64,000 nt of DNA, from IMG/VR virus record IMGVR_UViG_3300037054_000148, positions 249,598-313,597 of that record. One strand, written 5' to 3'. The translations under genes and the position numbers were made by a program. This document shows, one piece after another, positions 16,167-59,785 of the stretch (position 1 is the stretch's first letter; each line of letters starts with the position of its first letter). Below the pieces are notes generated by a model, which was not told the DNA's origin, did no database searches, and saw nothing but the letters and a program-made list of their open reading frames with translations.

Positions 16167-16187
16167 TTTACTTTGCCTAGCAGCCTA

Positions 16188-17739: not shown

Positions 17740-17798
17740 GATCTAGACCAGACACAGGGTGGGAAAGTGACTATTCACTTCTAGAAGTGGAGGCTGTT

Positions 17799-18530: not shown

Positions 18531-18562
18531 CCAGAACGCAGTAACATCCCTAAGAGGCCGTA

Positions 18563-18892: not shown

Positions 18893-18895
18893 AAT

Positions 18896-18976: not shown

Positions 18977-18990
18977 AACTAAGGAGAAAC

Positions 18991-19656: not shown

Positions 19657-19685
19657 ACGAGTAATAAGTAAAAGGAGTTTTACCT

Positions 19686-19955: not shown

Positions 19956-19959
19956 CCCG

Positions 19960-20496: not shown

Positions 20497-20505
20497 AAGG
20501 CCCCC

Positions 20506-20940: not shown

Positions 20941-20970
20941 TTGAGACTCCTCACCCTGGTATCAGAAAGT

Positions 20971-22047
20971 TTAAGTTGTTGCTGTATCTATAAAAATGAA
21001 GTCCTTAACAAAATCTACGTTCAAAACTACTAAGGCCGTGGACCCTGTTCCGGGGGCGGGAGAAAATGTTACTGATAGAACACCTGAGCTAAAGTCCACA
21101 CTACTAGGGATAAAAGCAGCCCCAGAGATACCAAACGTATCCGAGTAGGCACTACTCACTCCTTTTTTAAATATCATCCACATACTCATGTTGTCCACCT
21201 GATCCAAGATAGCAATAGACTGGTCGGTCACAAGGATCAAGGCGTTTGTAGGGAACCCTTGTGTGTCCCCTCTAGTGGTCTTATCACCCCCTCCGGTAGC
21301 CTCCGAGAACCATGGAGCAATCAGGGTTGGATTTTGAACTCCAGAAGTGTAGTAAAACCCGTCTGCCGCATAACCAGTCAACCCACCGGCAAACGTTGGG
21401 TTATAAAATAAATCTGTGCTTTGTGCAGGGACCAGACAAGAGCAATATACATTATTTCCGTATAGTTGGATATCCCCCAGGAGATCCTGAGAAAAACTGG
21501 AAATAAGGGGGGGATAAGATGAAACGGGGAGATTCAGAATGGTGCTAACATAAACATTATCAATATTAAATGTAATGCCTTGATTAAAGAATAGCTGAGT
21601 AGAAGTGAAAATCAGCGTAATAGTTTGTCCAGCAAACATTGATAAATCATACACACCCTGTTGCACCCAGCCCTTACCTACAAGTGGACTTCCGATGTTG
21701 TAAGTCGCCACAGTAGTGTAGTTACTGAAATGGTCTTCCACTTCGACGGTTAAGCTACAAGAGGGGTTGAGCAGGCTATCAGGGTGGGTTAGGCTATCGT
21801 CTATCTGTAAAACATAGGAGAGGGAGGCCGTGGAGAGGGGGGGGATGGTGAGGGACTGATAAATTATATCTATCTGGTTGTCTGAAATATTATGTCCACA
21901 TAAAGAGGCGCACCATTGCCCTGAGTAGGCTTCAGTATGGTTCATTAAAATATAAGGGGACTCAACGGTCCAGGCGGAGGGGTTGGACCCATCTGGATTA
22001 TTCTGAATCTCGAATCCTGGGTTTACAATGAGTTGTTGGGTAATCAT
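20971..22047 (-). CDS. Putative virion protein with carbohydrate-binding-like N-terminal domain
   Basis: LIVNPGFE...W...AYSGQW...IDNVYV jelly-roll pattern. Confidence 0.65.
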   Translation of the reverse strand: MITQQLIVNPGFEIQNNPDGSNPSAWTVESPYILMNHTEAYSGQWCASLCGHNISDNQIDIIYQSLTIPPLSTASLSYVLQIDDSLTHPDSLLNPSCSLTVEVEDHFSNYTTVATYNIGSPLVGKGWVQQGVYDLSMFAGQTITLIFTSTQLFFNQGITFNIDNVYVSTILNLPVSSYPPLISSFSQDLLGDIQLYGNNVYCSCLVPAQSTDLFYNPTFAGGLTGYAADGFYYTSGVQNPTLIAPWFSEATGGGDKTTRGDTQGFPTNALILVTDQSIAILDQVDNMSMWMIFKKGVSSAYSDTFGISGAAFIPSSVDFSSGVLSVTFSPAPGTGSTALVVLNVDFVKDFIFIDTATT

Positions 22048-22109
22048 GTGCGCTCCACATAAAAGGAATACAGAGTTCTTTCTTGAAGCTGATTTTTAAG
22101 GTGGCGTTC

Positions 22110-25100
22110 ATGTCCCAAAAGATTTACCCATTAGGATCTACCAGCAGAACCTTGGACCCCAGCGGACGAAGTTTTACAACGGTAGTCGGCAAGCATGACA
22201 AACGCATCACCGATGCGGATATCAATCTAATCCAGGACTTGCAGGATCTGAAAAGATACCTGCTCACGGAGAATATGGTCTTTTCTGGAGCACTCCAGGC
22301 TAACCCCTATATTTTCAACGAAGCGCAGGAACAGGTGTTCCTCATTCCTGCTTTCGATGTGATGTTTAATGGTGAGACTGTGACACTGGGTGGGTGCCGC
22401 TCCACAGACTTAGCTATGAACAAAGTAGTCTTACCGGCCCCTAATCCCTGGTCTTATGGAGAGGGCTCAGACTCGGCAGCTATTTATGTGGTCTTTGCAG
22501 AGCTTTGGTATCAGGCCCTAAACCCCTCTAATGGACAAGGTTACTTCGTTGATGTGACTGGGGCCAGATGGATATATGCGTTAGGCTGCATCGACTGTGA
22601 CCCCTCTAATTTGATTGCTGATGATGTGTTGGATCCGTTCCAAGGCTTGAACACAACTTCTCGGGCGCAAGTTCAATGGAATATTCGTATCGTCCGAGTA
22701 CCTCTCAGCTACGATTTCACTCAACGCAGATTTGGACTCGACTCTTTGGGGACCACAGAGGATGCGGTCTTCGGACAGGCGATGCTGGCATCCCCTCCGG
22801 CGCAGATTATCCCTGACCAAGACGCTGGTTATCCGTTTGTAAACATGGGTCAGGTCAACGGCGATTTTGGCCTCTGGCAGGCTGGAACAGGGATCCCGAC
22901 ATCCGGAGCCCCTCCCATCCCCACTCTGGACGGCTACAGCTACGCTATGCCCCTTGCAGTGGTGTTCCAGCGCAATCTTGGGGTATTTGACCCCTCAGTG
23001 AACCCTAATGGCTGTGCTAGCTCTCAGATCTCCAATAGCGGTCTTCTGGCCTCTGGTGTGTCGGGGCGCTATGATTACAAATATGCAGATGCAGTTTATC
23101 CAGAAGATGTGGTAGACACCCGACTGTCAGTCAGCCTCAACGGCTACGATTGGGATAAACTTCTACAAAGCGGGTTTGTGGATATCGTTAACGGGAACAT
23201 CGCTCAGAAAATTGGAAGAGGTGAAATCCCAGGAGCCTCCCCTTCTGTTATGGGGTCGGTCCTTCCATATACAGTGACACTTGGCCCCCAGGATACCTCT
23301 AATACAGACTATCTCGGGCCATTTGACGGCTATATGAATGGCTTTGGTGCAGATATTCGAACCTTCTATTCAATTCAGGCCATCTCAATCAACGAGAAAG
23401 TAACGGGAACCAATGGGGTCAGATGGAGCAAAGGTGATAGTATCACCATTAATCTGGACAGCACGAACACTCGACTCGGTGCCACCATCTCTTACTTAAT
23501 GGTGCAGGCTCAGGTTACTCAAACAAACGGCTCAATTAACCCAGTCCTCCTTCTGAGTGGTCAAATAACCACCACCGGAGTGGGGGGCCGCACTGCCACC
23601 GCAACCTTTAACAGTAACCTATCTGGCACCGCTTTTGATCCGGGTGTAAATGATCTTTATGTGACAATTGGAGTCCTCTACCCCGCAGGGTCTAATTATT
23701 CATTACGCCAGATCCCCACCAGCATCATGGGGGGCTCACTCTATGACGGTCAGATTAACAAAACCTTCCCAATCTTTGGCGTCTCAGAGTACGAGACATT
23801 CCAGCCGATTACTAATCAAAATAACCCATTGAGTGCTTACAACCCCTTGTACTCTAACAAAATATTTGGCACCAGGGCGAGTATTCCTGTGCCTGCCTCT
23901 AGCGGAGTCCCCACTACCTACGATAGCCTAAGTGTCTTGGAATTCACCATCCCTAGAACAAACATTAATGGCTATGTAAACTTCAATGGGATTTTCATTG
24001 TAAGCGCCACTGACTTAGCCTCTGGGGCAAATTATTCCATCTATTACACAGCAGTGGACGCGACTAATTTATATGTGATGACCCAACAGGTTCCATCCAC
24101 TATAAACCTTGTGTTCACTGTACTGCTGAATCAAACAGCCCAACTCAGTTACAACCCAGCCGTCAAAGCTGTGTCTTCTATCAGTGAAACTGTGTTGTTT
24201 GGAAACTACCAGAACTCCTCTAGCAGTCTGTTCCCCCTGGACCCCAGAATTAGCCTTCTCAGTTCCACTCAGATTGGCACCGGCTCCACGGCCACCACTT
24301 CGCTGATCTTCGGAACCACCGATGGGACACTTACGGGCGTGGGTGGCAGCCCTCTCAACAAATACATTTTTGTTGCGGATGACCCATCATTCCCTCAAAA
24401 ATTCAAGGCTTACCCATTATTGAGTGTTCAATTTTTCAACGGAATCACTACTGTAACTGTTCCAGCCACGGCAAATGTCGCAGTCTACCCCTACTTTATG
24501 GTGGGCTCTGTTAACCCCTCCTTTAGCATAAACTCTTCTTTGGCCATAGCCATGGAGTACCTACCCTACCAAGGTGAAGGGGACGCTACCCATACTTACA
24601 CACTTCTTCATTCAGAAGATACAGCCATGGTGACGACCAATGGAACGGGAGCCGCCCCCATCGTCGGGCTAAAGGATGTGTATCCTTATAATAGAGAGCT
24701 TCCAATTATCACCACTTTGCCCTCCCAACCTACTTGGAATGACTCGGACCTCACCAATCAGGCCATCGGAAATTATTTTGGCAATAACTACGAGGCGAAA
24801 CGCTTTAATAACGTGGAACATACTTTCTTCACCCCCCTTCACACCAACGATTTCATCGAGCCGGTTGGTGGCTGGAAGCGTAAATTAATTCAATTATCGT
24901 ACCCAGCGGGTCGTGGTTTTGCGAAAATCGCCCCCCATGTAGGATTTGCCATCACTTCTCCGACCCCTGAGTCCTCTCTCTCCAATGGAGGTGTCATGAC
25001 TATCGCCCCCATCAATCTATACGTTAACAACGTTAGCGGGAATGACGGGAATGACGGTCTTACCGCTCAGACACCGAAATTGACAATATACGGTGCGCTA

Positions 25101-37946: not shown

Positions 37947-40472
37947 ATGTCTTCCACTAATCCAGTTCCCTACATCCCGCTCTTAGAGGGCTATTCAGGA
38001 TATGTCTATCTCACAAATAGCACGACAGTCACAGGAATAAATTATGCCACTGGAGGGGACCAAGCGGCCACTCAGCCACTAGCCCTTCAGAATAATGTAA
38101 TTGGGTTTTCAAAGGCTCTGGGATCTGGACAGGGAAGATTACAGATCGCTTACGACTCTGTAAGTGACACCACCCAGCTTCAATATATTGGTGGGAGTCC
38201 TACCTCTCCAAATACCTGGGATGCCGCTATGGCTGATAATTTCCCTGTCTCCATTTCACTCACTGACATTGCTTACATAAATGCAGCCAACCAATATGAT
38301 TTGTACACATTTGTGCCCCCCGCCTCTGGGGCAAATGGAGCCGGTGCGGGAGGCTCTCAATTTACCTTTGAAGTGTGGGCTCTTTGTCAACCACAAATCG
38401 CCTCTATTTCCCCGACCAGTATTACGGCGGATGGGTCGGCTCACATTATTACAATTTCTTTGGCTCGAAGGCTTCACAGTTCTCAATCCCCAACTATTTC
38501 ACCCTCCATCACTGGGAGTGGGGTCACGCTTGGCACCCCTACTCCAATAACTAATGCGAACGGGCAGTTGACAGGATGGAGTATGACTGCCACCGCATTA
38601 GCCGCTCAGCCTACTTCTACGCAAAGTATCACTTTCGCTTTGACTGAGAATGCCACTTATCTGAGTGGGGATTCAATCGTCACTAACGCGCTGACCTACC
38701 CATCTAGCACTCAGAGTCTAGGTGTCATCTCAGAGGTCTCTTCATCCATCCCTATTGCCGCCACAGCCGCTACCCTGGTTGGGGGCTCCGGAACAGACGT
38801 TACCCATGGCCTAGTCACTGCCACATCCGGTGTTATCGCCGGAGGATTGACGGCTCAGGTTACCCTTACTTCTGGCACTCTATCAGATTTAACGGCTCCG
38901 GTAAACGTTGTCGCTCTTCCTTACAACTTTGCCACAGGGACGACTTCTTACACGAACCCGACCTTGAAGGCCATTAATAACCGCACCACTATTGCAACAA
39001 TGACTCCAGTCGGAGCCCCCACCATTGTAATTAATGCTCAAGGGAATAACGTTTATCAACAGCAATACTACGCAAATTTTGATACTTCTGCTCTGCTGTT
39101 GGATCCTTCTGGGAGCGCCTACCCTCAATGGCAAATCGGTTACTCCGCAACTGGCCCCACCGTCCCCTATACGAATTGGTTTGGAACCTATGTTAATGGT
39201 AATCTCACTGGGAACACCGCAGCTTACACAGTGTACGCCCTAGTTGGTGGAGATGAGTATGCCTACTCATCGGGTGTGTGGGAGGATGCGGCTGGGAACC
39301 CAGCCATAAACTTGTATTTCAGCGGCACAGTCCAGTTTTATATCTCCCCAAATTGGAACCCGGAAAATGTTATAAACTCTGCTCCAGAAGTGCTTACCTT
39401 GATCCAATACCAAATAGATGGAGGCACACTAACCTCTTCCAACTTAGCTACAACTTATACCGCAGGGAATGGGGATATCGCCATGGGTCTCGCATCCATT
39501 GATACGACAAAGTTCTCAGTGCCGACAGGGAACCACTCAATCACCTGGAAGTTGATCACCGATCTGGATACTGGTGCCACACAAACTCAAGTGCAAACCG
39601 CCACTGTAGCCTTCTCTACAAATCAAAGTGCTATTGGTGGGGCAATCCCTGATTACACCGTCTCCAGCACTTCCGCAACGACTCAATCCTTCGTGCAAAA
39701 CCAAAGCTCTTCTGTCTCCTGGGTACTCACTTACAAACCCAATATTCTATTCGCTGGCAGCTTGAGTTTCGGCATTACGGGACTTCCCTCTACTGGGACG
39801 ACCTTTGTGTTCACCCCTTCCACCCTGAGCCTTCTGCCAGGAGGGACCGCACTCAACACCACACTAACCCTAACAGCCTCAAGCGCACCAGTTGGGAACT
39901 ACCCCATCACCATTCACGCCACATCTGGGGCTTCAGATGACGCTCCTTTCAACGCGCTCTTATCCGTAGAGGCTCAGGTTATTGCTCCTGCCCCCCCTTA
40001 TCAGGAAACCGGCCGCTGCTGCTTCTTAGCTGGCACGAAGATAACAATGGAAAATGGGGTATTAAAAGACATAAAGGAACTAGAGGTAGGAGATAGGGTT
40101 GCCTCCTACGATATTTCTTCTAAAACCATGACCGTAGGGACTGTGGAGTTTATCCATAATCCTATCCGGAGTCATATCAATCATGTACAGTTTGAGGATG
40201 GAAAGGTGCTAAATGTTACCTCTGATCACCCACTTTACACAACTGAAGGTTGGAAATCATTAGATCCGGAATCAACCCAAGTTGGGTATGGCATGACCTG
40301 TAGGAGATTAGCTGAGGGGGATCAGGTCATGAATTTAAAGGGGGATTTCCTTACCATCACCAATATTGAATTTGAAGCTGGAGAGTTCCAAACATACGCT
40401 CCTGGAAGAGTGTCCGACTGCTCTACCTACTTTGCTGATGGCCTCTTAGCCCACAACTGTGGGGGCGGCTAG
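37947..40472 (+). CDS. Virion protein with C-terminal Hint (intein-like) domain
   Basis: CFLAGTKI (40020), TSDHP block B, YFADGLLAHN (40457) followed by CGGG-stop. Confidence 0.88.
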   Translation: MSSTNPVPYIPLLEGYSGYVYLTNSTTVTGINYATGGDQAATQPLALQNNVIGFSKALGSGQGRLQIAYDSVSDTTQLQYIGGSPTSPNTWDAAMADNFPVSISLTDIAYINAANQYDLYTFVPPASGANGAGAGGSQFTFEVWALCQPQIASISPTSITADGSAHIITISLARRLHSSQSPTISPSITGSGVTLGTPTPITNANGQLTGWSMTATALAAQPTSTQSITFALTENATYLSGDSIVTNALTYPSSTQSLGVISEVSSSIPIAATAATLVGGSGTDVTHGLVTATSGVIAGGLTAQVTLTSGTLSDLTAPVNVVALPYNFATGTTSYTNPTLKAINNRTTIATMTPVGAPTIVINAQGNNVYQQQYYANFDTSALLLDPSGSAYPQWQIGYSATGPTVPYTNWFGTYVNGNLTGNTAAYTVYALVGGDEYAYSSGVWEDAAGNPAINLYFSGTVQFYISPNWNPENVINSAPEVLTLIQYQIDGGTLTSSNLATTYTAGNGDIAMGLASIDTTKFSVPTGNHSITWKLITDLDTGATQTQVQTATVAFSTNQSAIGGAIPDYTVSSTSATTQSFVQNQSSSVSWVLTYKPNILFAGSLSFGITGLPSTGTTFVFTPSTLSLLPGGTALNTTLTLTASSAPVGNYPITIHATSGASDDAPFNALLSVEAQVIAPAPPYQETGRCCFLAGTKITMENGVLKDIKELEVGDRVASYDISSKTMTVGTVEFIHNPIRSHINHVQFEDGKVLNVTSDHPLYTTEGWKSLDPESTQVGYGMTCRRLAEGDQVMNLKGDFLTITNIEFEAGEFQTYAPGRVSDCSTYFADGLLAHNCGGG

Positions 40473-48088: not shown

Positions 48089-48138
48089 GCTCAGGCTCAA
48101 ACTCCCCGACTATGGGTATCAATATTGAGAGTGTGAGC

Positions 48139-51100
48139 ATGAAGAGAGCATTTGTCCTACCTGAGCAGGGTGTCATTAATATCTATTTCATCCGAGATGA
48201 GCGGCCCCGAATCCAGTGGCTGATTGACTTGGGTATTCCTCGATTTTCAGTATTCATGCTAGAACTCCCTATCCCTTTGGACAACCCAGGACACACCCAG
48301 ATTGTATTTCATGAAGGGACTGCACTTATCCTAGAACAAATCAAGGCTTTCTTATCCGAGACTGAGTTCGGAGAGGATGCGGGGGTCATCAAGGCGATGA
48401 TGCAGGCTATCAAGCAGACCGAGATCGACTTCTACGGAACTGAATTGATGTACGGTTATGAAATCCTGTTCCCTTTGAGCCAGCAATTCTACGATCTAGT
48501 TCATGAGCGAATTGTCAATCAGAAGACGGCCAGTGAAGACTCTGGTGCATGGAGCAGGCTTTATGATGATAACGTCAGTGATGAAGAGTTCTTAGAACGT
48601 CATGCAGGACGGGAAGAGGGCATCTCCAAATCTGTTTGGAGAGCACCGGACACAAATAAGCGTATGATGGTGGACCTGGGCAAACCAGTGCAGAAACGAG
48701 ATAAACAGGAATTAAATGACGCTCGTAAGATAATCGACCGCTACAAGCAGACCATCTACAAGAGCACCCCAGGCCCTTTGTTCGTCATCCTATACGACCG
48801 CAATGGGCTTCCACGAGGCGTTAGTCGTGTAACCAATAAGGGACTGACCAAATGGGCCGATGGCTCTGAAGTACCTAGGGAACTTTTAACTGCATTGATT
48901 GACATCTTTGGGGAACAGGACGCCGATCAAGTCAAAGTGGCTGAAGAGAAGCCTAAAAATATCCCAAAGGATCTGCTCAAAAAACTTCCCGGCATTCACG
49001 AAATATCACCAGAAGGTCAGGATGAAGGGGAGGGGGATAACAATTGGGAGGAGCCTAATGGCTACTCTCAGACCGTCAGGGATCGCTTAAAGCTCCTGAG
49101 AGAGCGAACCGGAATGGAGCTTCCAGTTTTAGGGGAAGGGTCTTCCCGTATGGTCGTCGGGGTAAATGAACATGTTGCAATCAAGCTAGCGATCAATCAG
49201 CCCGGTGTGGCTCAGAACAAAGCCGAACTCAGAATGTATGAGAAGGTTGAGGATTGCACTATTATCACTCGCATTTTTTACTATGATACTGAGTTTCACT
49301 GGCTCGTAGTTGAGCGAGTCCTAAGAGGGGCCACCTATTCAGATTTCGAACGATATGGAGCAACCGACGCCTACAACTTTTGTAAAAAAGTAGAGCGTGG
49401 GGGAACAGAATTTCTTACAGATAGGCAGGCAGTGAAATCTCTTCAGTTCTTATGCCAGACACTTGGTGTTAAATGGTGGGACATTGATCGAGAGAGCCAG
49501 TGGGGGCTGGTCGAACGTAGGGGTGAGCGGTATCCGGTCTTGGTAGACTACGGACTTGATGAAGAGGTGGCCCGACAACACTACAGCAGCAAACTTGCCG
49601 CAGGGTGGGGTAGTTTCATCAATGGTGAATACTGGGTAGATGGCGACTCAGCGAACAACTATGCAGAATGCAGTGGAGACGGGGACTATACCCACGAAAC
49701 CTATGCCAGAGAACAGATTCTCAATGACAAGTGGGACCAAATTCTTAGTGCTTGTCAGCGTCATCTTCAGGAGGCCCACGAAGAAGAAGATGACAACAAC
49801 CCAGGAGAGGTGGAGGAAGAGTGGCGAAAGCTCCATGCGATGAAGTATGGGGAGCCTGACTTTCCAATGGAAGATGTGTTCTTTACCCTCATCTGGGGCT
49901 ATGTTTCGTTAGAAGAGTGCGATGCCATCTTCAATGGTGAATACGACATGTTCAAGAATGAGGTTCGGGAATTCTTCATGCGATTCTACAACCAGATCCG
50001 GGTCGTGGACAAAAATTTCGAAGTGTGGAAACTCACCCCTCGAAACCTTGACACCATCATCGATTGGGTATTTAATGAGAGTGGGCTGGATGAATCCGAC
50101 TTAGCTCAGATGAAGGATGAGGTTTATATTGAGCAATACGAAGGTGGCAGAAAATACGCAGGGATTCCAATTGGGGAGCTTCTAAACATGAAGAACCCAG
50201 GCGAAGTTTGGCGTTATCAAGGAATGACCGTGGCCTCGAAGCAGGCTGCGATGGTTGAACTTCCACACGATAAGGAAGTCAAGCTCCCCCTCTACATGCT
50301 GAAGAAACTCAAACAAATGGCCCAAAAGTTTGATCCCCAGGCTGACTTCCGCTTTGTCGGGGGCTGCGTACGTGATATGCTCCTGGACCGCAAACCAAAG
50401 GATTTCGATGTCGTCACCAACACCACGGCTGACACTTTACAGAAGATGGGTTTGGAGAACGTGGGAAAGGCTTTTCCTGTCTACCTCTACCATGACCCCA
50501 CGTATGGCCAGATTGAAATCGCTGTGGCTCGTTCGGAAGAAAAGACTGGGGTGGGGCATAAGGACTTTGATATCGTTCCAACCGGCAATTTCGAAGGAGA
50601 TATGGTTCGCAGAGACCTGAATGTGAACGCCATGATGGTGGATGCGGATGGAAAACTCTTCGGCCCCACTGAAGCCCTACAGAACATCAAGGACAAGACC
50701 CTCCAGAATGTCAGTGAGAAGTTCGCTGAGGATGCGTTGCGCGTTTTCCGAGCCGCACGATTCAGTGCTCAGTTTGGGTCAGAGTGGAGGGTCAGTCCCC
50801 AACTGGTGGACATGATGCACCGGATGCAACCTGAACTTCAATATCTTCCGGCTGATCGTATCAGGGAAGAAACTAAACGTGCGCTGGTCGGTAAAGTTCC
50901 CATGCGCTTCTTTGAAGTGCTGCGTGAGGGGGGTTGCCTGGAACCCTGGTTCAGCGAGTTCGATCAAAACTGGAGTCAAATAGCTGAATCGGTCAACTAC
51001 GGTCATCAGAATGGCTGGGATTTTGACTTGCAGATCGTTGGGATTGAATCACAGCTTCCCATTCCGGATAGCCTGAATAACCGGCTTGGTCTGTCGAATC

Positions 51101-54100
51101 AGATCAAGCAGGCGGCTCAGTTTGTTAAAAAAAATAGGGGGAATATTAAACAAGCCAGGGCTCTTCCTAAAGAAACAGTAGTTGGGATCGTTCAAAGCGG
51201 GGTTAGAGGTGCGTTTGAGTTCGTGCAGCTACTGGACTGTGCGTTGCTCGGGACTAACCCAGACTCCAAGGACTTCTTACTCAAATGTGCGGAAGCCATC
51301 AAGGGCACCGATATGACAGGAGTGACAAGCCGCAATGAGGCTACAGAACGTTTGGTAGGGGCCATTTCAAAGGTCGGACACTCTAAGAGAGCTATGTCAG
51401 CACAGCAGGCAGTAAATGAGGCTGTAAAATTGATCACTCAAGAAGAGATCAAGCAGCCCAAACCGTGGCAAACTCCGCAATTTAGAGCGTGGTTTGGAGA
51501 CTCCAAAGTCGTAAATAAGGATGGAACCCCCAAGCGCGTCATGCATGGAACCACTCATGAATTCGATCAATTTTCCTTGCACAATGCATTTGAGGAAGGC
51601 TGGTATGGCAAGGGGTTTTATTTTACAGATTGTGAAAAGGATGTGGAGAACTACGCTTCCTTAGAGGGGCCAGATCTCACGGCCAGGATAGAGTTGGTCG
51701 CTGAGCGTCTAATGGATGACGGGGGCGACTGGGAAGAGAGCATGGGAGAGGAGCATGAGGACAACTCAAAGAGTATCCGTGAGTTAGCTCATCAAAAAGC
51801 TCAAGAAATGATTGCTGGGAAGCATCACGGGACAGTTTACCTCACCTATTTGAAGATGGAGAACCCTGTTATTGTTACCCCCAACGGAGGAACCTATCTT
51901 GGGGGGGACAGTGGATCTGACCCAGAGAACGAGGATGAATGGCTAGATGGCCCCGAAACCACCAAGCTATACGAGGCGATTCAGGCTGCTTGCTCACAGT
52001 TTGGCCTAAATGAGAAACGTATCTGGGATAGCCAACTATCTGATAGGCTGTTGGAAGGCTGCACAGCTTACGAGTTTGAAAAAGACTTACGGGAGAATGA
52101 TGAAACTTTAGATGCAGAGGGGGGAGCGGGTCCAGTGATATCCGCCATCTATGAGGCTATGGGGTTTGATGGGATCATTATGGATGCTAAGGCTCAATTC
52201 GGAAATGGGAATACGGGGATGAAGATGTCTCCTAAGACCCGCCATTACATCGTATGGAACCCCCGTCAGGTTAAGTCGGCTATAGGGAACAAAGGGACGT
52301 TTGACCCCTCCAGTCCCCTGCTAACGGCTGCGGTAAAGCCTAGAACGCAGGGTGGAGGATTGAACGTAGATCCTGTAGAACAGATAGTTGATGAGGAAAC
52401 CCCAGAGAAAGAGAAGACCACCCCTCTGACTCAGGAGGAAGAGGATATGGCTAAGTCGCTGGCGGATAAGCGAATCAGCCCTGCGGCTCCAAGCAACGTG
52501 CTTAAGCCCGGTGCGATTGATCCGCATAGTCATGCCCAGAGTCAGCCCGACTTGAAAAAAATGATGGAGAACGAAAAGTTCGAGTTCAACGTCAACCTAG
52601 CGGTAGACAACTATCCTAACTTCAAATACATGCGAGAAGGTCGCTATAAGCAATTTGATGCTCATGAGAAGGCTGAGGAAATCATCAATCACATGGCTGC
52701 AAATTTGATTTGGCTCTATAAGACCTGGGATAAGGCCCTGTCAGATAGAGCCAAACTCTGGTATGTAGGGGGTAACCGTATAATCCATCGGTGGGCTGAT
52801 AAGTTCCATCTAGACCCGCATAAAGTGGCAGCAGTGATTGCCGCTCTATCCCCACAGGCACATTGGTTCCAGAATGTTACAACCGCAGAGCGTACCATCG
52901 AAGCCTTGGTAGAACTCAAAGACTTCCGCTGGGATTGGAAGATGGACCGTGTGGCCCTGCATCGTAACTGGACCCCTGAAGACTTGGAAGATGAGATGAA
53001 GGAATCGGTCAAAGTCGGAGAGGCTGCGGAGAAGAAGAAAAACAAAAAGGAGAGTGCCAAGAAAGAGAAAGAGCCCAAGATCAAGTGGTCCGCAGCACTG
53101 GCTATCCCCCTGCTTCGTGGCAAGACTCTGAATGAAGTAATGACCGAAAACAGTCCCGAATCAGGCCGAGAGTACTTAGCCTCTGTGTGGATCAGGGCCT
53201 GGGCCGAAGGGCACACAGATAACAAACTCCGTGAAGTCACCCCAGAGGGGAACTTTGGGGACTGGTTTAAGACTGGAAAGGCTGACGCCAAAGTCCGTTG
53301 GACATCCTTCGCTGCCATTACCAAAGCTGTCCGGATTTTAGAGTCTAACTCTGTCAACGATATCTCTAAATTGGTTGGGACTAACCACAAGGTTCGCTCA
53401 TTCTATAACAATCTCATCGCCCCTATGGCGGATGAAGGGGATGTAACAATTGATACCCATGCAGTTGCTGCCGCTCTTATTCGTCCGCTGAGTGGAGCTT
53501 CTGTAGAGGTGGCTCATAACTTTGGCAGTGGGTTTACCCCCAAAAAGGATAAGAACGGCAAAATTTGGGTTTGGGATGAGGATGAGGGGGAGTATGTCGA
53601 GGGGGATCCTGATGCAGAAAAGATCCCAGGACCAAGCAACAGTTCAATCACCGGCCTCAACGGACTCTATGCTCTTTACGCTGAGGCATACCGTAGGGCC
53701 GCGAAAGATCCTGCGGTGGGGGTTCTACCCCGCGAACTCCAGTCGATCACCTGGGAGGCTGTGAGAGCCCTTTTCAACCCGGCTGACAAACGGGACAAGA
53801 AGTTCATACGTATGGCAAACGAGATCTGGGCCTCGCACGATCCAGAGGATGGAGGGCTCAATGCCGAACAAGCTAGGGAAAAAATCACCGCTGTTATCAA
53901 AGAACGAAGAGGTGGAAAAGAAGTCTTCGAAACCCCAAGTTGGATCGGATCCGATCCTGAGATTCATGGAGACGCACAAGGTTCCTCTTACAAGAGAGGC
54001 TTATCTGGGTCTGGCATACCCGGATCACAAGCCGGGGGCATTACTCCCACCGGAATTGGAGGCGGAGCTTCCCGAAGAACTTCGAGAAAAATAAACTCCC

Positions 54101-54687
54101 CACTGCTGATGAAGATTGGAGCCCTGACGTTCAAACATGAGCACAGAGACTACCGATATGGACAGAACTACTTCGTCTTGTTTGCTTTTAACGGCAAGTT
54201 CTGTGTGGGTGAGATTCGCTACTCAGTTTATGAGGACGGCCCCTATATTGATAACATTGATGTAGGGAACCATGTTCTAACCAATCTAGAAACAAAAAAG
54301 CTCATGTCAGAACGGTTGCGTAAGGCAACTGATCCAACAGAGTATGTGGGCCATGAGATGCTCAAGTATTTACAAAAACTCTATCCGGATAAAGACCTTG
54401 GGGTGAGACATGCCGATGCCGCTAAGGGGCTAGATTTTGATGAAATGGAAACTGAATATGCCCCTCTGATGGATGAAAAAGAGGCGCTGACTAAAGAGCA
54501 ACAAAACATTGACCAAGCTCTAGAGGAAAACTCCAAAAGGAACGTAGCTTATCAAGACTGGGAGGATCATTATAAGAAACTCATGGATCGTTGGAATTGG
54601 ATTGACGACAGGCTCTACGAGATTGAGCAGGCTCTGAACGTCTACCCCACTCCGGTAAGACAGAAACGTCTTATCAGAACAACATAA
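48139..54687 (+). CDS. Large polyvalent protein: kinase-like, CCA-adding nucleotidyltransferase, ADP-ribosyltransferase-like, glycosylase-like and GNAT-like domains
   Basis: LGEGSSR..AIKLA..E..VDYG (~49130-49560); VGGCVRD..KDFDV, RRDLNVNAM, EDALRVFRAARF (~50350-51350); FRAWFGDSKVV..MHGT..GFYFT..QVKSAIGNKGTFD (~51470-52310); AALSPQ..KVRSFYNN..VTIDTHA..ELQSITW (~52600-53950); GNAT-like tail is tentative. Confidence 0.88.
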   Translation: MKRAFVLPEQGVINIYFIRDERPRIQWLIDLGIPRFSVFMLELPIPLDNPGHTQIVFHEGTALILEQIKAFLSETEFGEDAGVIKAMMQAIKQTEIDFYGTELMYGYEILFPLSQQFYDLVHERIVNQKTASEDSGAWSRLYDDNVSDEEFLERHAGREEGISKSVWRAPDTNKRMMVDLGKPVQKRDKQELNDARKIIDRYKQTIYKSTPGPLFVILYDRNGLPRGVSRVTNKGLTKWADGSEVPRELLTALIDIFGEQDADQVKVAEEKPKNIPKDLLKKLPGIHEISPEGQDEGEGDNNWEEPNGYSQTVRDRLKLLRERTGMELPVLGEGSSRMVVGVNEHVAIKLAINQPGVAQNKAELRMYEKVEDCTIITRIFYYDTEFHWLVVERVLRGATYSDFERYGATDAYNFCKKVERGGTEFLTDRQAVKSLQFLCQTLGVKWWDIDRESQWGLVERRGERYPVLVDYGLDEEVARQHYSSKLAAGWGSFINGEYWVDGDSANNYAECSGDGDYTHETYAREQILNDKWDQILSACQRHLQEAHEEEDDNNPGEVEEEWRKLHAMKYGEPDFPMEDVFFTLIWGYVSLEECDAIFNGEYDMFKNEVREFFMRFYNQIRVVDKNFEVWKLTPRNLDTIIDWVFNESGLDESDLAQMKDEVYIEQYEGGRKYAGIPIGELLNMKNPGEVWRYQGMTVASKQAAMVELPHDKEVKLPLYMLKKLKQMAQKFDPQADFRFVGGCVRDMLLDRKPKDFDVVTNTTADTLQKMGLENVGKAFPVYLYHDPTYGQIEIAVARSEEKTGVGHKDFDIVPTGNFEGDMVRRDLNVNAMMVDADGKLFGPTEALQNIKDKTLQNVSEKFAEDALRVFRAARFSAQFGSEWRVSPQLVDMMHRMQPELQYLPADRIREETKRALVGKVPMRFFEVLREGGCLEPWFSEFDQNWSQIAESVNYGHQNGWDFDLQIVGIESQLPIPDSLNNRLGLSNQIKQAAQFVKKNRGNIKQARALPKETVVGIVQSGVRGAFEFVQLLDCALLGTNPDSKDFLLKCAEAIKGTDMTGVTSRNEATERLVGAISKVGHSKRAMSAQQAVNEAVKLITQEEIKQPKPWQTPQFRAWFGDSKVVNKDGTPKRVMHGTTHEFDQFSLHNAFEEGWYGKGFYFTDCEKDVENYASLEGPDLTARIELVAERLMDDGGDWEESMGEEHEDNSKSIRELAHQKAQEMIAGKHHGTVYLTYLKMENPVIVTPNGGTYLGGDSGSDPENEDEWLDGPETTKLYEAIQAACSQFGLNEKRIWDSQLSDRLLEGCTAYEFEKDLRENDETLDAEGGAGPVISAIYEAMGFDGIIMDAKAQFGNGNTGMKMSPKTRHYIVWNPRQVKSAIGNKGTFDPSSPLLTAAVKPRTQGGGLNVDPVEQIVDEETPEKEKTTPLTQEEEDMAKSLADKRISPAAPSNVLKPGAIDPHSHAQSQPDLKKMMENEKFEFNVNLAVDNYPNFKYMREGRYKQFDAHEKAEEIINHMAANLIWLYKTWDKALSDRAKLWYVGGNRIIHRWADKFHLDPHKVAAVIAALSPQAHWFQNVTTAERTIEALVELKDFRWDWKMDRVALHRNWTPEDLEDEMKESVKVGEAAEKKKNKKESAKKEKEPKIKWSAALAIPLLRGKTLNEVMTENSPESGREYLASVWIRAWAEGHTDNKLREVTPEGNFGDWFKTGKADAKVRWTSFAAITKAVRILESNSVNDISKLVGTNHKVRSFYNNLIAPMADEGDVTIDTHAVAAALIRPLSGASVEVAHNFGSGFTPKKDKNGKIWVWDEDEGEYVEGDPDAEKIPGPSNSSITGLNGLYALYAEAYRRAAKDPAVGVLPRELQSITWEAVRALFNPADKRDKKFIRMANEIWASHDPEDGGLNAEQAREKITAVIKERRGGKEVFETPSWIGSDPEIHGDAQGSSYKRGLSGSGIPGSQAGGITPTGIGGGASRRTSRKINSPLLMKIGALTFKHEHRDYRYGQNYFVLFAFNGKFCVGEIRYSVYEDGPYIDNIDVGNHVLTNLETKKLMSERLRKATDPTEYVGHEMLKYLQKLYPDKDLGVRHADAAKGLDFDEMETEYAPLMDEKEALTKEQQNIDQALEENSKRNVAYQDWEDHYKKLMDRWNWIDDRLYEIEQALNVYPTPVRQKRLIRTT

Positions 54688-54722
54688 TTCGCAACCCTCT
54701 ATTGAACTGTTTGGAGCCCCAC

Positions 54723-57470
54723 ATGTCTGAAGTCATCACTCTTCTTGCCTCTCTGGCTTCTCCGTTGATCCGTAAAGAGGCTATCAGCGAGAGGAAAATT
54801 GAGTTTCTATCCGGACCCACCCGTTACGGCCCGAAGCTCTATCACTACGTAACCACCCATAATCTGGTCAATCTGATGGATGAAACTCTGGGTGAAGAAG
54901 CAGAACAGAAAGAGGCGAAAAAGCAAAATGAGCAGATGCTTAATGCAAAATACGCTCAGATTCTGACTCAAATTGCAGCGGCTGACCCCACGGACGGGAT
55001 CAACAAGAATGACTTTACTGAGTGGCTGTTGAAGGTCTGGTTGGCCATGGATGATGCGGCACGAGGTCACTGGGGTGAGGATACGGCAAATATCAAACAG
55101 AGCCTCACGGACTTTGTGGATCTTCGCAAGAGCCCGGAATGGAAAAAACAGGAGCTACCCACTGATTTGAATCGATTCTCTGATCTGGCAAATCTTAGAA
55201 GCACCTTGACAAAATTTAACTCCGCCTCAGATATCTATACTCTTCCTGAGCTAAGCCCAGAAGGGGCAACGATCATCTACCAGGATAAGACATATATTTT
55301 GTGGCAAGTAACCAGTGCAAAAGATCTGACCGCTTTATCTCGCTTCCCTGAAAACAACCCACCCGCATGGTGTACCAACGATGAGGGCACTGCTGCACGT
55401 TACCTTTCTTCTGGTCCGGACTATGTGGCTTATAAGAATGGAGACCCATTCTTTCAGCTTGACCCATCAGAAGATGAGCACCACGATAAATCCAAAGCTC
55501 AGTTTATGAGCCGCAACAATACACACATGTATGGGACTAAATTGATGAACCCAGAGTGTGCGGAACTGATTGAAAAAGCCCTCGCACATGGAAAAATGAA
55601 TGAGAGGGCCAGAGAAGACCTAACTAAGACAATGGGATGTTACCAAGTTCCCAATTTAAATGACGCAGAGACCTTCTCCTACCTGCAAGAATACGTAATG
55701 GTTAATGGCGGAAATATAAAAAAGGATAAAAAGTTTCTGGATGCAGAAGAAAAATATGTTCGCCCCAGATATGAGCTTTTAGAGCCTGATGAGCTTCGGG
55801 AACTGTGTAACCGTTATGCTCGTACCGGAGAGGCGGTCGCCCCTTACTATGAAGCCAACAAAAATGTGACTGAAATATCCAAGAAAATTGATAATACAAA
55901 ATCTTACACTGATTTTGTAAAATCAATGAGCACTCCAGACACAGACCCTAACCATCTCACACCCGCAGAGTATGGGTTGGCTTTTAGAATTGACCCGTTG
56001 TTTAAGAAGGTATTCAACCTCTTCTCCAAAGAATACGATTGGGATGAGAAGTTTGCAAAATTCAGAGCGGCTGTCAAAGAAGGAAGCGAAAAAGCTGTGA
56101 ACGAGGGGGAGGCCCTAGTTAACCTTCTGAATAGCAAGTTCCCCAGCAGCACTTACAGCTATGATAGAAGCGATGGAAATGTCACTGGGTTCACCATCCA
56201 ACTAATGGGGGGGTATGGGGCTCATGGGATGCAGACCAAGGATTTCACTAGAAATATGGCGGTTCAACCTTATATCAAAATGATCAAGAACATGTTCCGG
56301 CCCTTTGTCAATCAGGCTTGGGAGAAAGCTGTTGAACAGGCTAAGGCAGAGCCAGATTACGGTGTTGCACACCAGCTGCTGAAGGATGCGGGGGACACAT
56401 ACAAGCGTAGAGTATCGGGAGATGGGGGGGCAGAGGAACGCGCACAGGCGGCTGTCAGACAAGCTCTGAAGGATATCGAAATCCCAGCTAGGGAGAAGCT
56501 GGATGCAGCCTTAGCTGGGTTCACCAAGCTCAAGGAGGTGGCAACTTACGGACGAGAGAACTTCCTAAATGGTAGTCCCTTTAAGATCAGAAAAATTCCC
56601 TCTTGGGCACAGCCCTCCTTTGAGAAGAAGATCACAGAGATTGAGCTTCTTACTGAGAAAGCCATGGAGGACAAGCTCCAGAAAGTGGACAGAGGTGAAG
56701 TTAAGATTCGTACCACTCCAAAGCGTGAATATGAATTCTGGAAAGATAATCATCGGGATAAGGATCTTCCAGACCCAACGGACAAGGTGCTGGAGTGGGT
56801 CATCAACTCTCCTTCGTTTGATGATAACAACATCATGGACGCACTGATTGAAATGAAGAACATCTCTGCGGTCGGTGAGGCTTGGATATTGCAGAAGGCA
56901 CGTTATATCGGATCATGGAGACTAGACAAATACATGGAGAAGTTCCATCCAAAACGATGGCCGGAATTGGAAACGGCGTATCCGGCTATTCTCGATGATG
57001 ATGATTATGTCAATCGAGTATATGAAAAGAATGAGCGAATTCCTCGTCAGGAAGAGGCTATTCTGGCCGGAGTCGGACGAAGGAGAGGCGTCAGCAGTGC
57101 TATTGCATACATCAAAGAACGAATGAACAGTAAGCCATGGCCTGAACTTGAAAAAGCGGTAGCGAAGGAGTTCAAGAGCCGAAAGTGGTCTGAGAGCTTC
57201 TATGATGGTCCAGGAAATATAGCTGGGGAGATTCTTGAGTATATCGCTGAAATTAAAAAGAGTCGCTGGAAAGATATCGAAGAGAAAATGTTTGAGAACC
57301 AGGATTGGGGATATAAATACCTCTTCCAGGTGTTGGGGGCTGATGAGGCTTCTAAACGTATCCGTAAGCTATTGGATGAAGAGAGTGAGACGCTTCCTAG
57401 GGGGGAGAAACAATCTCGACTCCATCAGGTTCTATTCGCCAAAGTAATATCCTATAAGGAGTCCGTATGA
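54723..57470 (+). CDS. Large modular protein (DPT/WCT N-terminal domain plus WPELE repeats)
   Basis: ADPT..FTEWL and WCT.DE.TA..YL..GP.YV shared with 58064-59785; C-terminal RWPELE/PWPELE/RWKDIE repeats. Confidence 0.8.
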   Translation: MSEVITLLASLASPLIRKEAISERKIEFLSGPTRYGPKLYHYVTTHNLVNLMDETLGEEAEQKEAKKQNEQMLNAKYAQILTQIAAADPTDGINKNDFTEWLLKVWLAMDDAARGHWGEDTANIKQSLTDFVDLRKSPEWKKQELPTDLNRFSDLANLRSTLTKFNSASDIYTLPELSPEGATIIYQDKTYILWQVTSAKDLTALSRFPENNPPAWCTNDEGTAARYLSSGPDYVAYKNGDPFFQLDPSEDEHHDKSKAQFMSRNNTHMYGTKLMNPECAELIEKALAHGKMNERAREDLTKTMGCYQVPNLNDAETFSYLQEYVMVNGGNIKKDKKFLDAEEKYVRPRYELLEPDELRELCNRYARTGEAVAPYYEANKNVTEISKKIDNTKSYTDFVKSMSTPDTDPNHLTPAEYGLAFRIDPLFKKVFNLFSKEYDWDEKFAKFRAAVKEGSEKAVNEGEALVNLLNSKFPSSTYSYDRSDGNVTGFTIQLMGGYGAHGMQTKDFTRNMAVQPYIKMIKNMFRPFVNQAWEKAVEQAKAEPDYGVAHQLLKDAGDTYKRRVSGDGGAEERAQAAVRQALKDIEIPAREKLDAALAGFTKLKEVATYGRENFLNGSPFKIRKIPSWAQPSFEKKITEIELLTEKAMEDKLQKVDRGEVKIRTTPKREYEFWKDNHRDKDLPDPTDKVLEWVINSPSFDDNNIMDALIEMKNISAVGEAWILQKARYIGSWRLDKYMEKFHPKRWPELETAYPAILDDDDYVNRVYEKNERIPRQEEAILAGVGRRRGVSSAIAYIKERMNSKPWPELEKAVAKEFKSRKWSESFYDGPGNIAGEILEYIAEIKKSRWKDIEEKMFENQDWGYKYLFQVLGADEASKRIRKLLDEESETLPRGEKQSRLHQVLFAKVISYKESV

Positions 57471-58054
57471 TAGGCAATGACAAAATGACTATTCCAGTAA
57501 AAGGTTATATTCGAGTATTCGAAGAGGCCAATCCGAAGAACATCATCTTCGAAGAGCATAATGTGATATGCCTGAATACGCAGTATCTGTTCGCTAGAAT
57601 GATGGCCAATATCGCAGATCCGGTCGCCGGGGTCTGGGGTCTTGCGATTGGGGCGGGTGCGCCAGACTGGCCACTCAACAATCAACCGGATGCGTTGCCC
57701 ACCCAGCAGAACATCATCACTCCCATCCTTCGTAAGCCCTGCCGCTACATTCAGTTCGTGGATGTGAACCTGAATGTTATTCCGAGTGGGGGGTTCTCCA
57801 ACATAGTTGATTTCCAGACTATTCTGAACGCGACAACTGATAGCATCAATACCCCCATCAGAGAGCTAGGGCTCATCGGTGGAGGCAGCACTGCTTCGTC
57901 TACAAACCTTCAGGTAGCCCCCTTCTTCAACAATGCCACTCAGTCTAGTATCAACGATACAAACACGGCCCTCCTGATCAATTACAAAACTCTCCCGCCC
58001 CTGGTGCTTCCAGCCGGAATCAATTTCATCATGAGTTGGGTCTTGACATTCTAA
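57467..58054 (+). CDS. Tail-fibre/baseplate adaptor-like protein
   Basis: EHNVI, LAIGAG, IRELGL, final WVLTF pattern typical of tail-collar/gpH N-terminal-like proteins. Confidence 0.6.
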   Translation: MIGNDKMTIPVKGYIRVFEEANPKNIIFEEHNVICLNTQYLFARMMANIADPVAGVWGLAIGAGAPDWPLNNQPDALPTQQNIITPILRKPCRYIQFVDVNLNVIPSGGFSNIVDFQTILNATTDSINTPIRELGLIGGGSTASSTNLQVAPFFNNATQSSINDTNTALLINYKTLPPLVLPAGINFIMSWVLTF

Positions 58055-58063
58055 GAGGCCCAA

Positions 58064-59785
58064 ATGCCATCTTCATTATTAACCAGACAAGCCATTCTGA
58101 TTGACGCAGCCGCTTCAGCAAATAGACAGCAGGCCCTATTGGATAAGTATCCCGTGGACCGAGCGGAGGTGGAGCAACTTGCGAATGTTGACCCTACTCC
58201 TAATGGCACCTACACGGAGTTCCTTGTCAGAGAATTCACGAAGAGGCGGTTTGGTCTCAATCGGATGGCTCTGGATGAAGCACATGATGCGTTGGTTAAA
58301 TTCAATCGACTGAAGAACTCACAAGAGTTTCGAAATATGCCCAATACCCATACGGATATTTTGGCCTATGATTACCACACATTCTTAGCCCAAATGGCAG
58401 AAGCAGGACGGGCACAGCTATCAAAAAATGAGCAAGAACGAGAACTAAAGCGCAGAAGGCAGAAATATTTAGACGAGGGCTGTGAGTTGTTGACCGAGCA
58501 AAGAGGGTATGCCTTCTTCAAAGTCACCACTCCAGAGGCGGCAGTCCTGATGGGCCAGGGCTCTCACTGGTGTACAAAAGATGAGGCTACCGCACGTAAT
58601 TATTTGCGCCGTGGGCCACTCTATGTGATAACTCAAGAAACTGAGGGGGGAAATTACGGATCAGACCGTTACGCTCAGTTCTCTATTCCCAGTAGTGCCT
58701 ATGATATTGCTGCATTCGAATGTCAAGATGTGGACGGAAATGACTTCGGGAGTAAGGAGGCTGGGGATCGCTGTTACTACTTTAGTAATAAAGACTATTG
58801 GTGGCTTGTGGAAGTGCTAGAAAACTATGATGAAGTCCTGACCTTCTGGGTAAAAGAGGGATACGTTTTTAATGATTATGATAATATGCGCTATCTCGAA
58901 CAATGCTCAGAGTGCGGAAAATATGTGGATGAGAACTCAGAAGATTTATATTATACAGATGATGGGACTTTCTGCTGTAGAAGCTGCTTCTTAGCTCATT
59001 ACGAAAACAAAATTGAAGAAGAAGTGCATCGTCTGTATCACCCAGACTTAGAAGAGCATGACAAAATTGCAGCGGAAATAGAATTTTACATCAATAGCCC
59101 TGAATCCCCAGAGCATAAATACTTTGCTCTAGTGGATCAAGCCAAGCAGGTTGAATACCCAGATACCGAAAAATGGGGGTTTGCCACCCAACTTTCTAAT
59201 GCAAGGGGCTGTGCTACCGTCTCGCAAGAGAAAATCGATAAGATGATACCGGGCGTTAGAAAAGAAGACGGAGAGCGAGTTTACAAGCATTTGAAGGGGC
59301 TGATGGACCAGCTTAAGGATGAGGATGACTTGATTGAGGCAGCCTTTGACTATGTGAAAGAAGAGTTTGCTCCGGAAAATATGGATGTGGCTGAAATTTT
59401 ACGCGAGGGGGGCTACATAGACACCCAGCCTAAAAATAGCTCTCTGTTGAAGAAAGCTCGTAAAAACATTGGGGCCACCCTCACGGAAGAGCCAGAACAG
59501 GCCGATATTCTCACCAATTACCCAGTCCCTCAAGATATTAAAACCGCATCTCTAGCCTTAAAATCTGAATTTGAAAATTACAAACAAGGACGAAAAGGGA
59601 CACTGGAAAACGGACTTGTTGACTCTTTTTTGAAGGGGTCTGAAGTCTGGAAAAAGTTAGCGACTGCTCTTAACTCTCAAAACAGACGACTTGTCTTACA
59701 GGAACTAAGCCGCGAGGGAATCCAAAGAGGACATGCCAATGTCAGACACAGTTCGCAAATGGGTGATGGAGATCCAAGACGATGA
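58064..59785 (+). CDS. Modular protein (DPT/WCT domain plus zinc finger)
   Basis: VDPT..YTEFL, GSHWCT..YLRRGPLYVI; CSECG...FCCRSC. Confidence 0.8.
   Translation: MPSSLLTRQAILIDAAASANRQQALLDKYPVDRAEVEQLANVDPTPNGTYTEFLVREFTKRRFGLNRMALDEAHDALVKFNRLKNSQEFRNMPNTHTDILAYDYHTFLAQMAEAGRAQLSKNEQERELKRRRQKYLDEGCELLTEQRGYAFFKVTTPEAAVLMGQGSHWCTKDEATARNYLRRGPLYVITQETEGGNYGSDRYAQFSIPSSAYDIAAFECQDVDGNDFGSKEAGDRCYYFSNKDYWWLVEVLENYDEVLTFWVKEGYVFNDYDNMRYLEQCSECGKYVDENSEDLYYTDDGTFCCRSCFLAHYENKIEEEVHRLYHPDLEEHDKIAAEIEFYINSPESPEHKYFALVDQAKQVEYPDTEKWGFATQLSNARGCATVSQEKIDKMIPGVRKEDGERVYKHLKGLMDQLKDEDDLIEAAFDYVKEEFAPENMDVAEILREGGYIDTQPKNSSLLKKARKNIGATLTEEPEQADILTNYPVPQDIKTASLALKSEFENYKQGRKGTLENGLVDSFLKGSEVWKKLATALNSQNRRLVLQELSREGIQRGHANVRHSSQMGDGDPRR

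Follow-up and report, generated by a model that had tools for sequence, protein, structure and literature searches.

Polyvalent proteins are polypeptides of phages and conjugative elements that unite disparate domains, and Iyer, Burroughs, Anand, de Souza & Aravind 2017 (PMC5512222), who listed 131 domains in them, argued that they are packaged and injected. Their catalogue includes kinases without a C-lobe, and the nucleotidyltransferases (NTases) that it lists are the minimal NTox45-like, RelA/SpoT and GGDEF types; CCA is never mentioned in the text. The T4 ADP-ribosyltransferase (ART) Alt, the N4 virion RNA polymerase (vRNAP) and P1 DarB/DdrB are synthesized late, packed into the particle and functional as soon as they enter the cell, Alt acting on host proteins, and none of them has an RNA-repair activity. 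The repair of tRNAs by phage enzymes is represented by T4 Pnkp and Rnl1, which restore tRNAs damaged by the host defence nuclease PrrC, and the stand-alone tRNA nucleotidyltransferases of phages (phrog_2244; RaK2-like and other jumbo phages) have likewise been interpreted in the literature as RNA repair enzymes acting on tRNA 3' ends. Here we describe a gene at 48139..54687 (+) of a 64,000-nucleotide stretch (hereafter the window; positions 249,598 to 313,597 of IMG/VR virus record IMGVR_UViG_3300037054_000148), in which a predicted CCA-adding enzyme, elsewhere the product of its own gene, is embedded in a protein of ~2,180 aa.

Domain composition of the giant protein

The product of this gene is, by its domain content, a polyvalent protein sensu Iyer et al. 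2017: a CCA-type NTase, an ART, a kinase-like domain, DUF7178 and other modules occur in one polypeptide, encoded in a context of He_PIG, Hint and weakly Baseplate_J-like proteins with conserved synteny. Like the catalogued proteins, it has ART-PolyVal, a C-lobe-less kinase-like domain and a GNAT-type candidate in one giant chain, its gene seems to lie among virion genes, and its relatives differ by module-by-module shuffling. Unlike them, it has a class II CCA enzyme, the later-defined DUF7178 and three unnamed modules, and it lacks MuF, MPTase, SNF2 and methylase domains. Polyvalent proteins themselves are already known; what is new here is a polyvalent protein with an RNA-repair module. The original prediction, of a polyvalent multi-enzyme protein of about 2180 aa with at least five modules in series, agrees with our finding of 2182–2191 aa and eight modules (M1–M8), of which M1, M2 and M4 had not been named. 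Its remark that a CCA enzyme is unusual in such a fusion also holds: none is found in the Iyer 2017 catalogue, and our search for relatives among 5.8 billion proteins yielded seven related clusters with this combination (P denotes protein clusters and L relative loci below).

M5 (50251..51381, +, aa 714–1090) is predicted to be a complete class II tRNA nucleotidyltransferase of the CCA-adding type, with head, neck and body/tail all present; it lacks the HD phosphohydrolase domain that is found in E. coli-type Cca. In Pfam, the head matches PolyA_pol (PF01743) with 62–65 bits against a gathering score of 23 and the neck matches PolyA_pol_RNAbd (PF12627) with 29–32 bits against a gathering score of 22, while phrog_2244 (tRNA nucleotidyltransferase) aligns over 323 residues, at profile positions 4–357 of 392, with E 6e-66. 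Motifs A (GGxVRD...DxD), B (RRDxxxNA) and D (EDxxRxxRxxRF) are all present and align to solved class II enzymes among the matches to poly(A) polymerases and CCA enzymes in the PDB, and the catalytic motifs are invariant in six relatives. Among the NCBIfam models, the CCA addition/repair equivalog PRK10885 scores 177 bits as against 79 and 64 bits for pcnB, and the short CCA equivalog PRK13297 aligns with M5 over positions 16–337 of 364. The class II CCA/poly(A) nucleotidyltransferase of the original prediction is thereby confirmed by profiles. The closest stand-alone CCA enzymes are 370–385 aa long and 52–56% identical over 95% of M5, and identity to the enzymes of deposited phages, where stand-alone CCA genes occur in 484 records, mostly of jumbo phages, is only ~30–35%. 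M5 shares with the phage enzymes and bacterial Cca the class II fold, the catalytic motifs and the size (~370–390 aa), and it represents a divergent phage subfamily of class II CCA-type enzymes.

The window contains four tRNA genes (12386–12835, +; Gly-GCC, Val-CAC, Arg-TCG and Thr-CGT), which together make up everything that Rfam detects in it, and all four encode their own 3' CCA. A CCA-adding enzyme would therefore be dispensable for their primary maturation, as in E. coli, and M5 most plausibly serves in repair, in keeping with the tRNA 3'-end repair proposed at the outset. Between tRNA-Gly and tRNA-Val we noticed a permuted tRNA-like gene (12461–12604, +), in which the 3' half precedes the 5' half, with two bases between them; the former comprises an anticodon-stem strand, the T-arm, the 3' acceptor strand and the discriminator, the latter the 5' acceptor strand, the D-arm and the other anticodon-stem strand with the loop. 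As it stands, it is missed by ARAGORN and Rfam; when the halves were rejoined in silico, ARAGORN recognized a tRNA in 185 of 524 junction variants. This gene encodes no CCA and its product would hence need a CCA-adding enzyme. An ORF at 15471–16139 (+) encodes a member of the 2H phosphoesterase/2'-5' RNA ligase superfamily (LigT-like), which also matches the anti-CBASS protein Acb1; its product could heal cyclic-phosphate RNA ends before CCA addition, or degrade cyclic-nucleotide signals.

M6 (51394..52323, +, aa 1095–1404), already recognized as ADP-ribosyltransferase-like in the original prediction, can now be assigned to ART-PolyVal, both by Pfam (PF18760, the H-Y-[E/D] ART clade; 65.7–72.7 bits, gathering score 31.2) and by family alignments. 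Its core is interrupted by an insert of ~150 aa. The H-G-T and G-x-YFT motifs are conserved, as is the C-terminal tail ...KSAxGNxGTFDP..., a family-wide motif that here takes the form FDPSSPLLTAA. In cluster P0004, an insert of ~230 aa (aa ~385–625) lies between the CCA and ART modules and opens with a second ART-like segment of the H-G-T type.

M3 (49114..49587, +, aa 335–492) is a small protein-kinase-like domain without a C-lobe. In an alignment of 30 homologues the G-x-G-S-x-R Gly-loop, the Lys of VLK, the Glu of QN..E, GD and DYG are invariant or nearly so, and the profile matches the minimal effector kinase SteC of Salmonella (8jbi) with E 0.004 over 30 residues, in the G-loop/VAIK region only. 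The nearest Atlas clusters are viral proteins of 167–200 aa, with Phage_T7_kinase among the neighbours; the predicted model of the nearest neighbour superposes on Pkinase and APH models with a template modelling (TM) score of ~0.6, and M3 also matches phrog_4301. No kinase match was obtained in Pfam or NCBIfam, and single-sequence PDB searches with the kinase-like and C-terminal segments returned only noise. The similarity to the effector-type kinases SteC and T7 protein kinase extends to the G-loop, the VAIK-type lysine region and the small size, and it is marginal; together with the invariant motifs and the Atlas neighbours it supports the kinase-like identity that had been proposed for this segment.

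M7 (52459..54081, +, aa ~1450–1990) is DUF7178 (PF23802; 85.4 bits, gathering score 27), a hub domain common to more than 40 polyvalent protein clusters, and is followed by a Gly-rich disordered tail. An AlphaFold (AF2) model built from a 32-sequence alignment is mainly helical and confident (predicted local distance difference test score, pLDDT, 84; predicted TM score 0.84), and many polar residues (H, D, E, R, K, N) are invariant, but the model has no neighbour in the PDB (none at E<=0.001; best E 0.4 with TM ~0.1) and in BFVD it matches uncharacterised phage proteins only. Pfam gives nothing else for this segment, so the glycosylase-like domain once assigned to it is not supported, nor is the suggested role in DNA processing. 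The lack of a PDB match also led us to discard a lysozyme or a MuF-like domain, and among the listed BFVD matches none is named MuF or head-morphogenesis protein; matches to tape-measure proteins were insignificant (E>1), and that idea was dropped as well. DUF7178 occurs in only three deposited phages, one of them the cultured roseophage CRP-738, where the DUF7178 protein is encoded between portal and coat, and we found no mention of it in the literature searched.

M8 (54097..54684, +, aa 1996–2191) consists of a small beta-meander with helices in its first ~100 aa and a long helical hairpin, and was found only in the five closest, CCA-bearing relatives (P0001–P0005). The AF2 model, of moderate confidence (pLDDT 71), has a four-strand meander, helices and then the hairpin. 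The top Foldseek matches in the PDB are consistently GNATs, none of them significant (RibT: probability 0.99, E 0.06, TM 0.47; no TM above 0.47), and phage GNAT clusters of the Atlas score 0.83–0.86. Neither Pfam nor NCBIfam reports a GNAT match, and inspection by eye of aa ~2040–2075, the least confident stretch of the model, revealed no Q/R-x-x-G-x-G/A motif for binding the acetyl-CoA pyrophosphate. The earlier GNAT-like assignment thus survives as a weak lead at the level of the predicted fold and finds no counterpart in the family databases or in the acetyl-CoA motif.

The remaining modules have no assignment in Pfam, NCBIfam, the PDB or the Atlas. M1 and M2 (48139..48939, +, aa 10–276) form a conserved N-terminal unit that HMMER also finds as the very first part of proteins whose cargo differs (NUDIX, 5/29; ART-PolyVal; GNAT; HTH), a distribution like that of a fixed leader combined with interchangeable effectors. 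M4 (49600..50235, +, aa 497–708) is defined by the motifs GEYW...GD.GHE, which are invariant in the alignment of its homologues, and occurs elsewhere as stand-alone proteins of 210–290 aa; neither a PDB profile match nor an Atlas neighbour was found for it, and a weak match to dGTP_diPhyd_N (E 0.04) was dismissed. In an exhaustive HMMER search, M1, M2, M3 and M4 were each found alone or in other combinations (774 matches), and no paralogues of the modules were detected elsewhere in the window.

Proposed fusion of adjacent genes and the polyprotein alternative

The gene is a single unbroken open reading frame (ORF), 48112..54687 (+), of 2191 aa from its first ATG at 48112, or 2182 aa from the ATG at 48139 (MKRAF...), the start given in the original prediction, which we consider the probable one because homologues in P0001 and at L001 and L004 begin there and because GAGAG upstream resembles the sequence ahead of neighbouring genes; in our numbering this start is aa 10. 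The fused reading frame is not an assembly artefact, since independent peat metagenome assemblies reproduce it without indels: a contig from an independent run differs by 9 substitutions and 0 gaps over 48397–52529, and a second one by 36 substitutions and 0 gaps over 48100–51410. By hand count, 28 of the 36 listed variants fall at third codon positions, which indicates purifying selection. Clusters P0001 and P0002 comprise 32 and 10 member sequences, the gene sequence was found again in more than 12 peat metagenome studies, and fragments of it occur in peat and permafrost metatranscriptome libraries, while megablast of the gene against deposited phages gave no match; the phage lineage is widespread in peat and the source phage is uncultivated.

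Five clusters (P0001–P0005) share the architecture of CCA module, ART and DUF7178, and P0219 and P0220 were added when giant proteins were scored on the CCA module alone, bringing the total to seven clusters that are all related to one another. DUF7178 and/or ART-PolyVal, but not the CCA module, also occur in more than 60 further giant proteins (1.2–3.7 kaa), and as judged from these sequences the fusion of a CCA enzyme to a giant protein is rare and confined to one lineage. Several relatives preserve a split state. At L001, the counterpart of residues 10–710 is a separate gene of 766 aa (50% identity) and the adjoining P0005 protein begins at the CCA module, as does P0004, which starts at the SKQAA-M junction. 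At L004 and L005, a 627-aa protein composed of M1, M2 and two kinase modules ends with TAG and is followed after nine bases by the CCA...ART protein P0220, behind which come two more giant genes with ART-PolyVal, whereas at L002 the gene is divided by one in-frame TAG (L002:9932–9934) after M2. The residues past this TAG still resemble the window protein before the next ATG, and at L004 the ATG that lies nine bases beyond the TAG (9989–9991) is in the same frame. These two TAG splits could reflect nonsense mutation, read-through or recoding; no suppressor tRNA was found (n=2 cases). L004 carries three consecutive giant genes (10001–24185; 1394, 1628 and >1847 aa), each with ART-PolyVal, which looks like an array of effector cassettes.

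The suggestion that some modules were formerly separate genes is thus substantiated by the splits exactly at SKQAA-M (L001, L004 and P0004) and after M2 (L002). As part of the explanation that we moderately favour, the gene would have arisen by end-to-end fusion of two adjacent genes that are still separate in relatives, the first encoding the M1–M2 leader, the C-lobe-less kinase and M4, and the second the complete CCA-adding enzyme, ART-PolyVal, the DUF7178 hub and the small GNAT-like domain.

The original prediction went further and regarded the product as a polyprotein to be cut into effectors at seven linkers, all of which we find as described: QKTA (aa 137), VKVA (aa 274), SKLAA (aa 493), SKQAA-M (aa 709–714), SKRA-M (aa 1091–1095), SSPLLTAA (aa 1400) and NSPLLMKIGA (aa 1995), with a Met after two of them (M714 and M1095). 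A protease might cleave these basic/Ala and SPLL junctions, before packaging or after entry, to release free effectors. S-K-x-A occurs three times, at module junctions only, as against 0.6 expected (shuffle P=0.02), and SPLL twice as against ~0 expected (shuffle P<0.001); the two junctions that are followed directly by Met include SKQAA-M, a gene boundary in relatives, and SKRA-M, where TC-TAAGAGAG-CT-ATG resembles the gene-start signature of the block, TAAGAGG-N5-ATG. This likeness of TAAGAGAG before M1095, the only one of its kind, is suggestive and no more, and a scan for internal Shine-Dalgarno sequences found no canonical one ahead of M335, M714 or M1095. The window also encodes a papain-family peptidase (16969–17739, +; Peptidase_C1, E 5e-14), to our knowledge an unusual gene for a phage, which would be a candidate protease should processing occur. 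Processing of polyvalent proteins was proposed by Iyer 2017 (PMC5512222), and P1 DdrB/DarA is processed, but that model relies on an MPTase in cis and the present protein has no peptidase domain of its own; N4 vRNAP and other polyvalent proteins are, moreover, delivered uncut (PMC5512222). The junctions themselves also count against cleavage: SSPLLTAA is the lineage-specific form of the ART-PolyVal tail (...GTFDPxxPxI...), which is found family-wide whatever comes next, and SKLAA is deleted in L001. Stand-alone M4 proteins begin with K-x-A and M3 ends with the HYS.K tail, so that these residues are domain ends. With the exception of one S-K-x-A, neither junction motif is found in 12 neighbouring proteins, large ones included, so that the junctions show no cleavage motif shared with these neighbours. 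We regard a true polyprotein as possible but doubtful.

Gene neighbourhood

The gene lies inside a tight co-directional block (22083 to 59785), whose other products include He_PIG Ig proteins (2266 and 1715 aa long) and one of 1288 aa that Baseplate_J matches below threshold. An 841-aa protein of the block (37947–40472, +) has a C-terminal Hint/intein-like autoprocessing domain (aa ~691–837), and relatives carry giant He_PIG and PT-HINT proteins. Immediately downstream are three conserved partners of 922, 195 and 573 aa (54702..59785, +), without a match in family or phage databases. The 922-aa (54702–57470) and 573-aa (58064–59785) proteins have in common an N-terminal domain of ~190 aa, which recurs in three tandem paralogues of ~750 aa downstream of stand-alone CCA genes (L006 11172–18051; L008 7975–14780); a common anchor with variable distal parts suggests, by analogy, a pattern like that of tail fibres or spikes. 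Neither tblastn nor PDB sequence searches returned anything for the 922-, 573- and 341-aa neighbours, and the giant neighbours have almost no PHROG or Pfam matches.

The stand-alone CCA genes of larger phage contigs reside in a homologous block, preceded by homologues of the window's 1278-aa and He_PIG proteins and followed by the three ~750-aa paralogues and then by collagen-like and giant He_PIG/PT-HINT genes. Residence of the CCA gene in this tail-fibre-like module would therefore predate the fusion. Genes for T4-type RNA ligase 1 and PTH2 are close to these stand-alone CCA genes. Scans for promoters and terminators found fewer sites than in shuffled sequences and were uninformative. Elsewhere in the window we noted a ferritin-like domain protein (17787–18530, +), two SLT lytic transglycosylase genes (18991–19656, +; 19960–20496, -) and a GIY-YIG homing endonuclease (8259–8954, +) that adjoins a DUF3326 protein (8947–9957, +; E 7e-52); HNH and GIY-YIG endonucleases are also present near the polyvalent gene in relatives.

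Possible function of the fused protein

Taken as a whole, we lean towards a late-made, probably virion-delivered polyvalent effector array with tRNA 3'-end repair, an explanation to which we give somewhat better than even chances. The protein would be packaged into the virion and enter the cell with the DNA, so that its enzymes could act before phage gene expression. The CCA module would rebuild tRNA 3' ends trimmed by host nucleases or immune effectors, as repair and not as primary maturation; the ART, kinase and GNAT-like modules would modify host proteins; and DUF7178 would be either an unknown enzyme or a virion-incorporation module. All modules could work while still joined, and cleavage is possible. 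We infer delivery from the gene context and the family literature: ART-PolyVal and DUF7178 are common to more than 60 giant proteins, and such proteins have been argued to be packaged and injected (Iyer 2017). The placement of the DUF7178 gene in CRP-738 and the use of M1–M2 at the head of varied effectors elsewhere speak for delivery too. In its logic this scheme resembles the action of T4 Pnkp and Rnl1, and a T4-type Rnl1 gene in relatives with stand-alone CCA and the LigT-like gene in the window are further points of contact; in contrast, the T4 enzymes mend the anticodon loop and are expressed early, while the CCA module belongs to another enzyme family, would act on the 3' CCA end and is possibly delivered pre-made. 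A suitable adversary has been described, as a bacterial immune nuclease clips the CCA tails of tRNAs, and according to its authors viral tRNAs offer no way around it and no viral answer to it is known. In the literature searched we found nothing on a tRNA nucleotidyltransferase in phage virions or among ejected proteins.

Several observations weigh against this explanation. M5 scores below every NCBIfam cut-off for CCA equivalogs (the best being 177 bits as against 451), its head domain also matches poly(A) polymerases, including structures of E. coli poly(A) polymerase I, and its specificity for CCA is thus predicted and not proven. The permuted tRNA-like gene nearby offers the enzyme a role in maturation instead of repair. 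Cuts of the Cas12a3 type can reach the discriminator base, and such ends could not be restored by a CCA enzyme. The third catalytic position of the ART module is His (H1378, invariant in six relatives) where many relatives have Glu, and across the family E, H, T, Q, S and N all occur, so that the activity of M6 is uncertain. Pfam detects in the protein no MuF, portal or MPTase domain of the kind that usually anchors an argument for packaging, and the "tail module" label of the block depends on Ig and Hint domains and the sub-threshold Baseplate_J match. Neither a capsid, portal nor terminase gene was identified in the window, from which the genome probably extends beyond it.

The protein might instead be an intracellular late product whose fusion is an incidental loss of a stop codon, with the CCA module serving the tRNA economy of the phage; it might complete the permuted tRNA-like transcript, for instance, or ensure that tRNAs can still be charged at late stages of infection. 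The CCA-less gene in the tRNA cluster, the missing packaging domain and the frequent occurrence of stand-alone CCA genes in phages with tRNA sets all agree with this, and close relatives differ freely in whether the genes are fused, one TAG or a short spacer being enough to separate them, as expected if linkage were neutral. However, relatives of only ~54% identity retain the CCA gene at the corresponding site of the structural block, its fusion partners ART-PolyVal and DUF7178 are characteristic of proteins that are regarded as injected, and the M1–M2 leader recurs on diverse effector cargo, all of which makes a purely intracellular role rather unlikely in our view. We think it less probable still that the protein is primarily structural, an internal virion, ejection or tape-measure-like component in which DUF7178 and the unassigned modules build or gauge the particle and the enzymes are passengers: the gene does sit among giant tail-type genes, DUF7178 alone is shared across the wider family and its CRP-738 homologue is encoded between portal and coat, but the invariant polar residues of DUF7178 are of the kind usually seen in active sites, the domain occupies very different positions from protein to protein and the tape-measure matches were insignificant. 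Most improbable, in our estimate, is an offensive or regulatory NTase, that is a poly(A)/oligo(C) polymerase tagging host RNAs for decay, or a MenT-like enzyme extending tRNA ends. MenT toxins belong to a different NTase family from that of M5. The good scores of the head domain against E. coli poly(A) polymerase I structures and the sub-cut-off CCA equivalog scores would accommodate such an enzyme, and NTase toxins that extend tRNA acceptor ends do exist (MenT3 paper); against it stand CCA-type profiles that exceed pcnB by ~100 bits, the extent and significance of the phrog_2244 match, and a body/tail region that can be aligned with a short CCA enzyme from end to end.

Returning to the delivered effector array, a bolder version of it would have the CCA module injected as a ready-made counter to CCA-clipping immunity or toxins, M1–M2 as a packaging/ejection leader and DUF7178 as a new enzyme fold; we put this combination forward tentatively, as a minority possibility. 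If true, it would be the first delivered RNA-repair counter-defence, and in M1–M2 we would see a novel leader for the packaging and ejection of exchangeable effectors. A complete CCA-repair enzyme hard-wired into a probable injected effector array is a concrete and testable candidate for a counter to immunity by tRNA 3'-tail cleavage. The series of fused and split genes in relatives provides natural material on how polyvalent proteins assemble, M1–M2 is a candidate N-terminal leader common to varied effector cargo, and DUF7178, which is large, highly conserved and without a structural relative, is a target for structure-function work.

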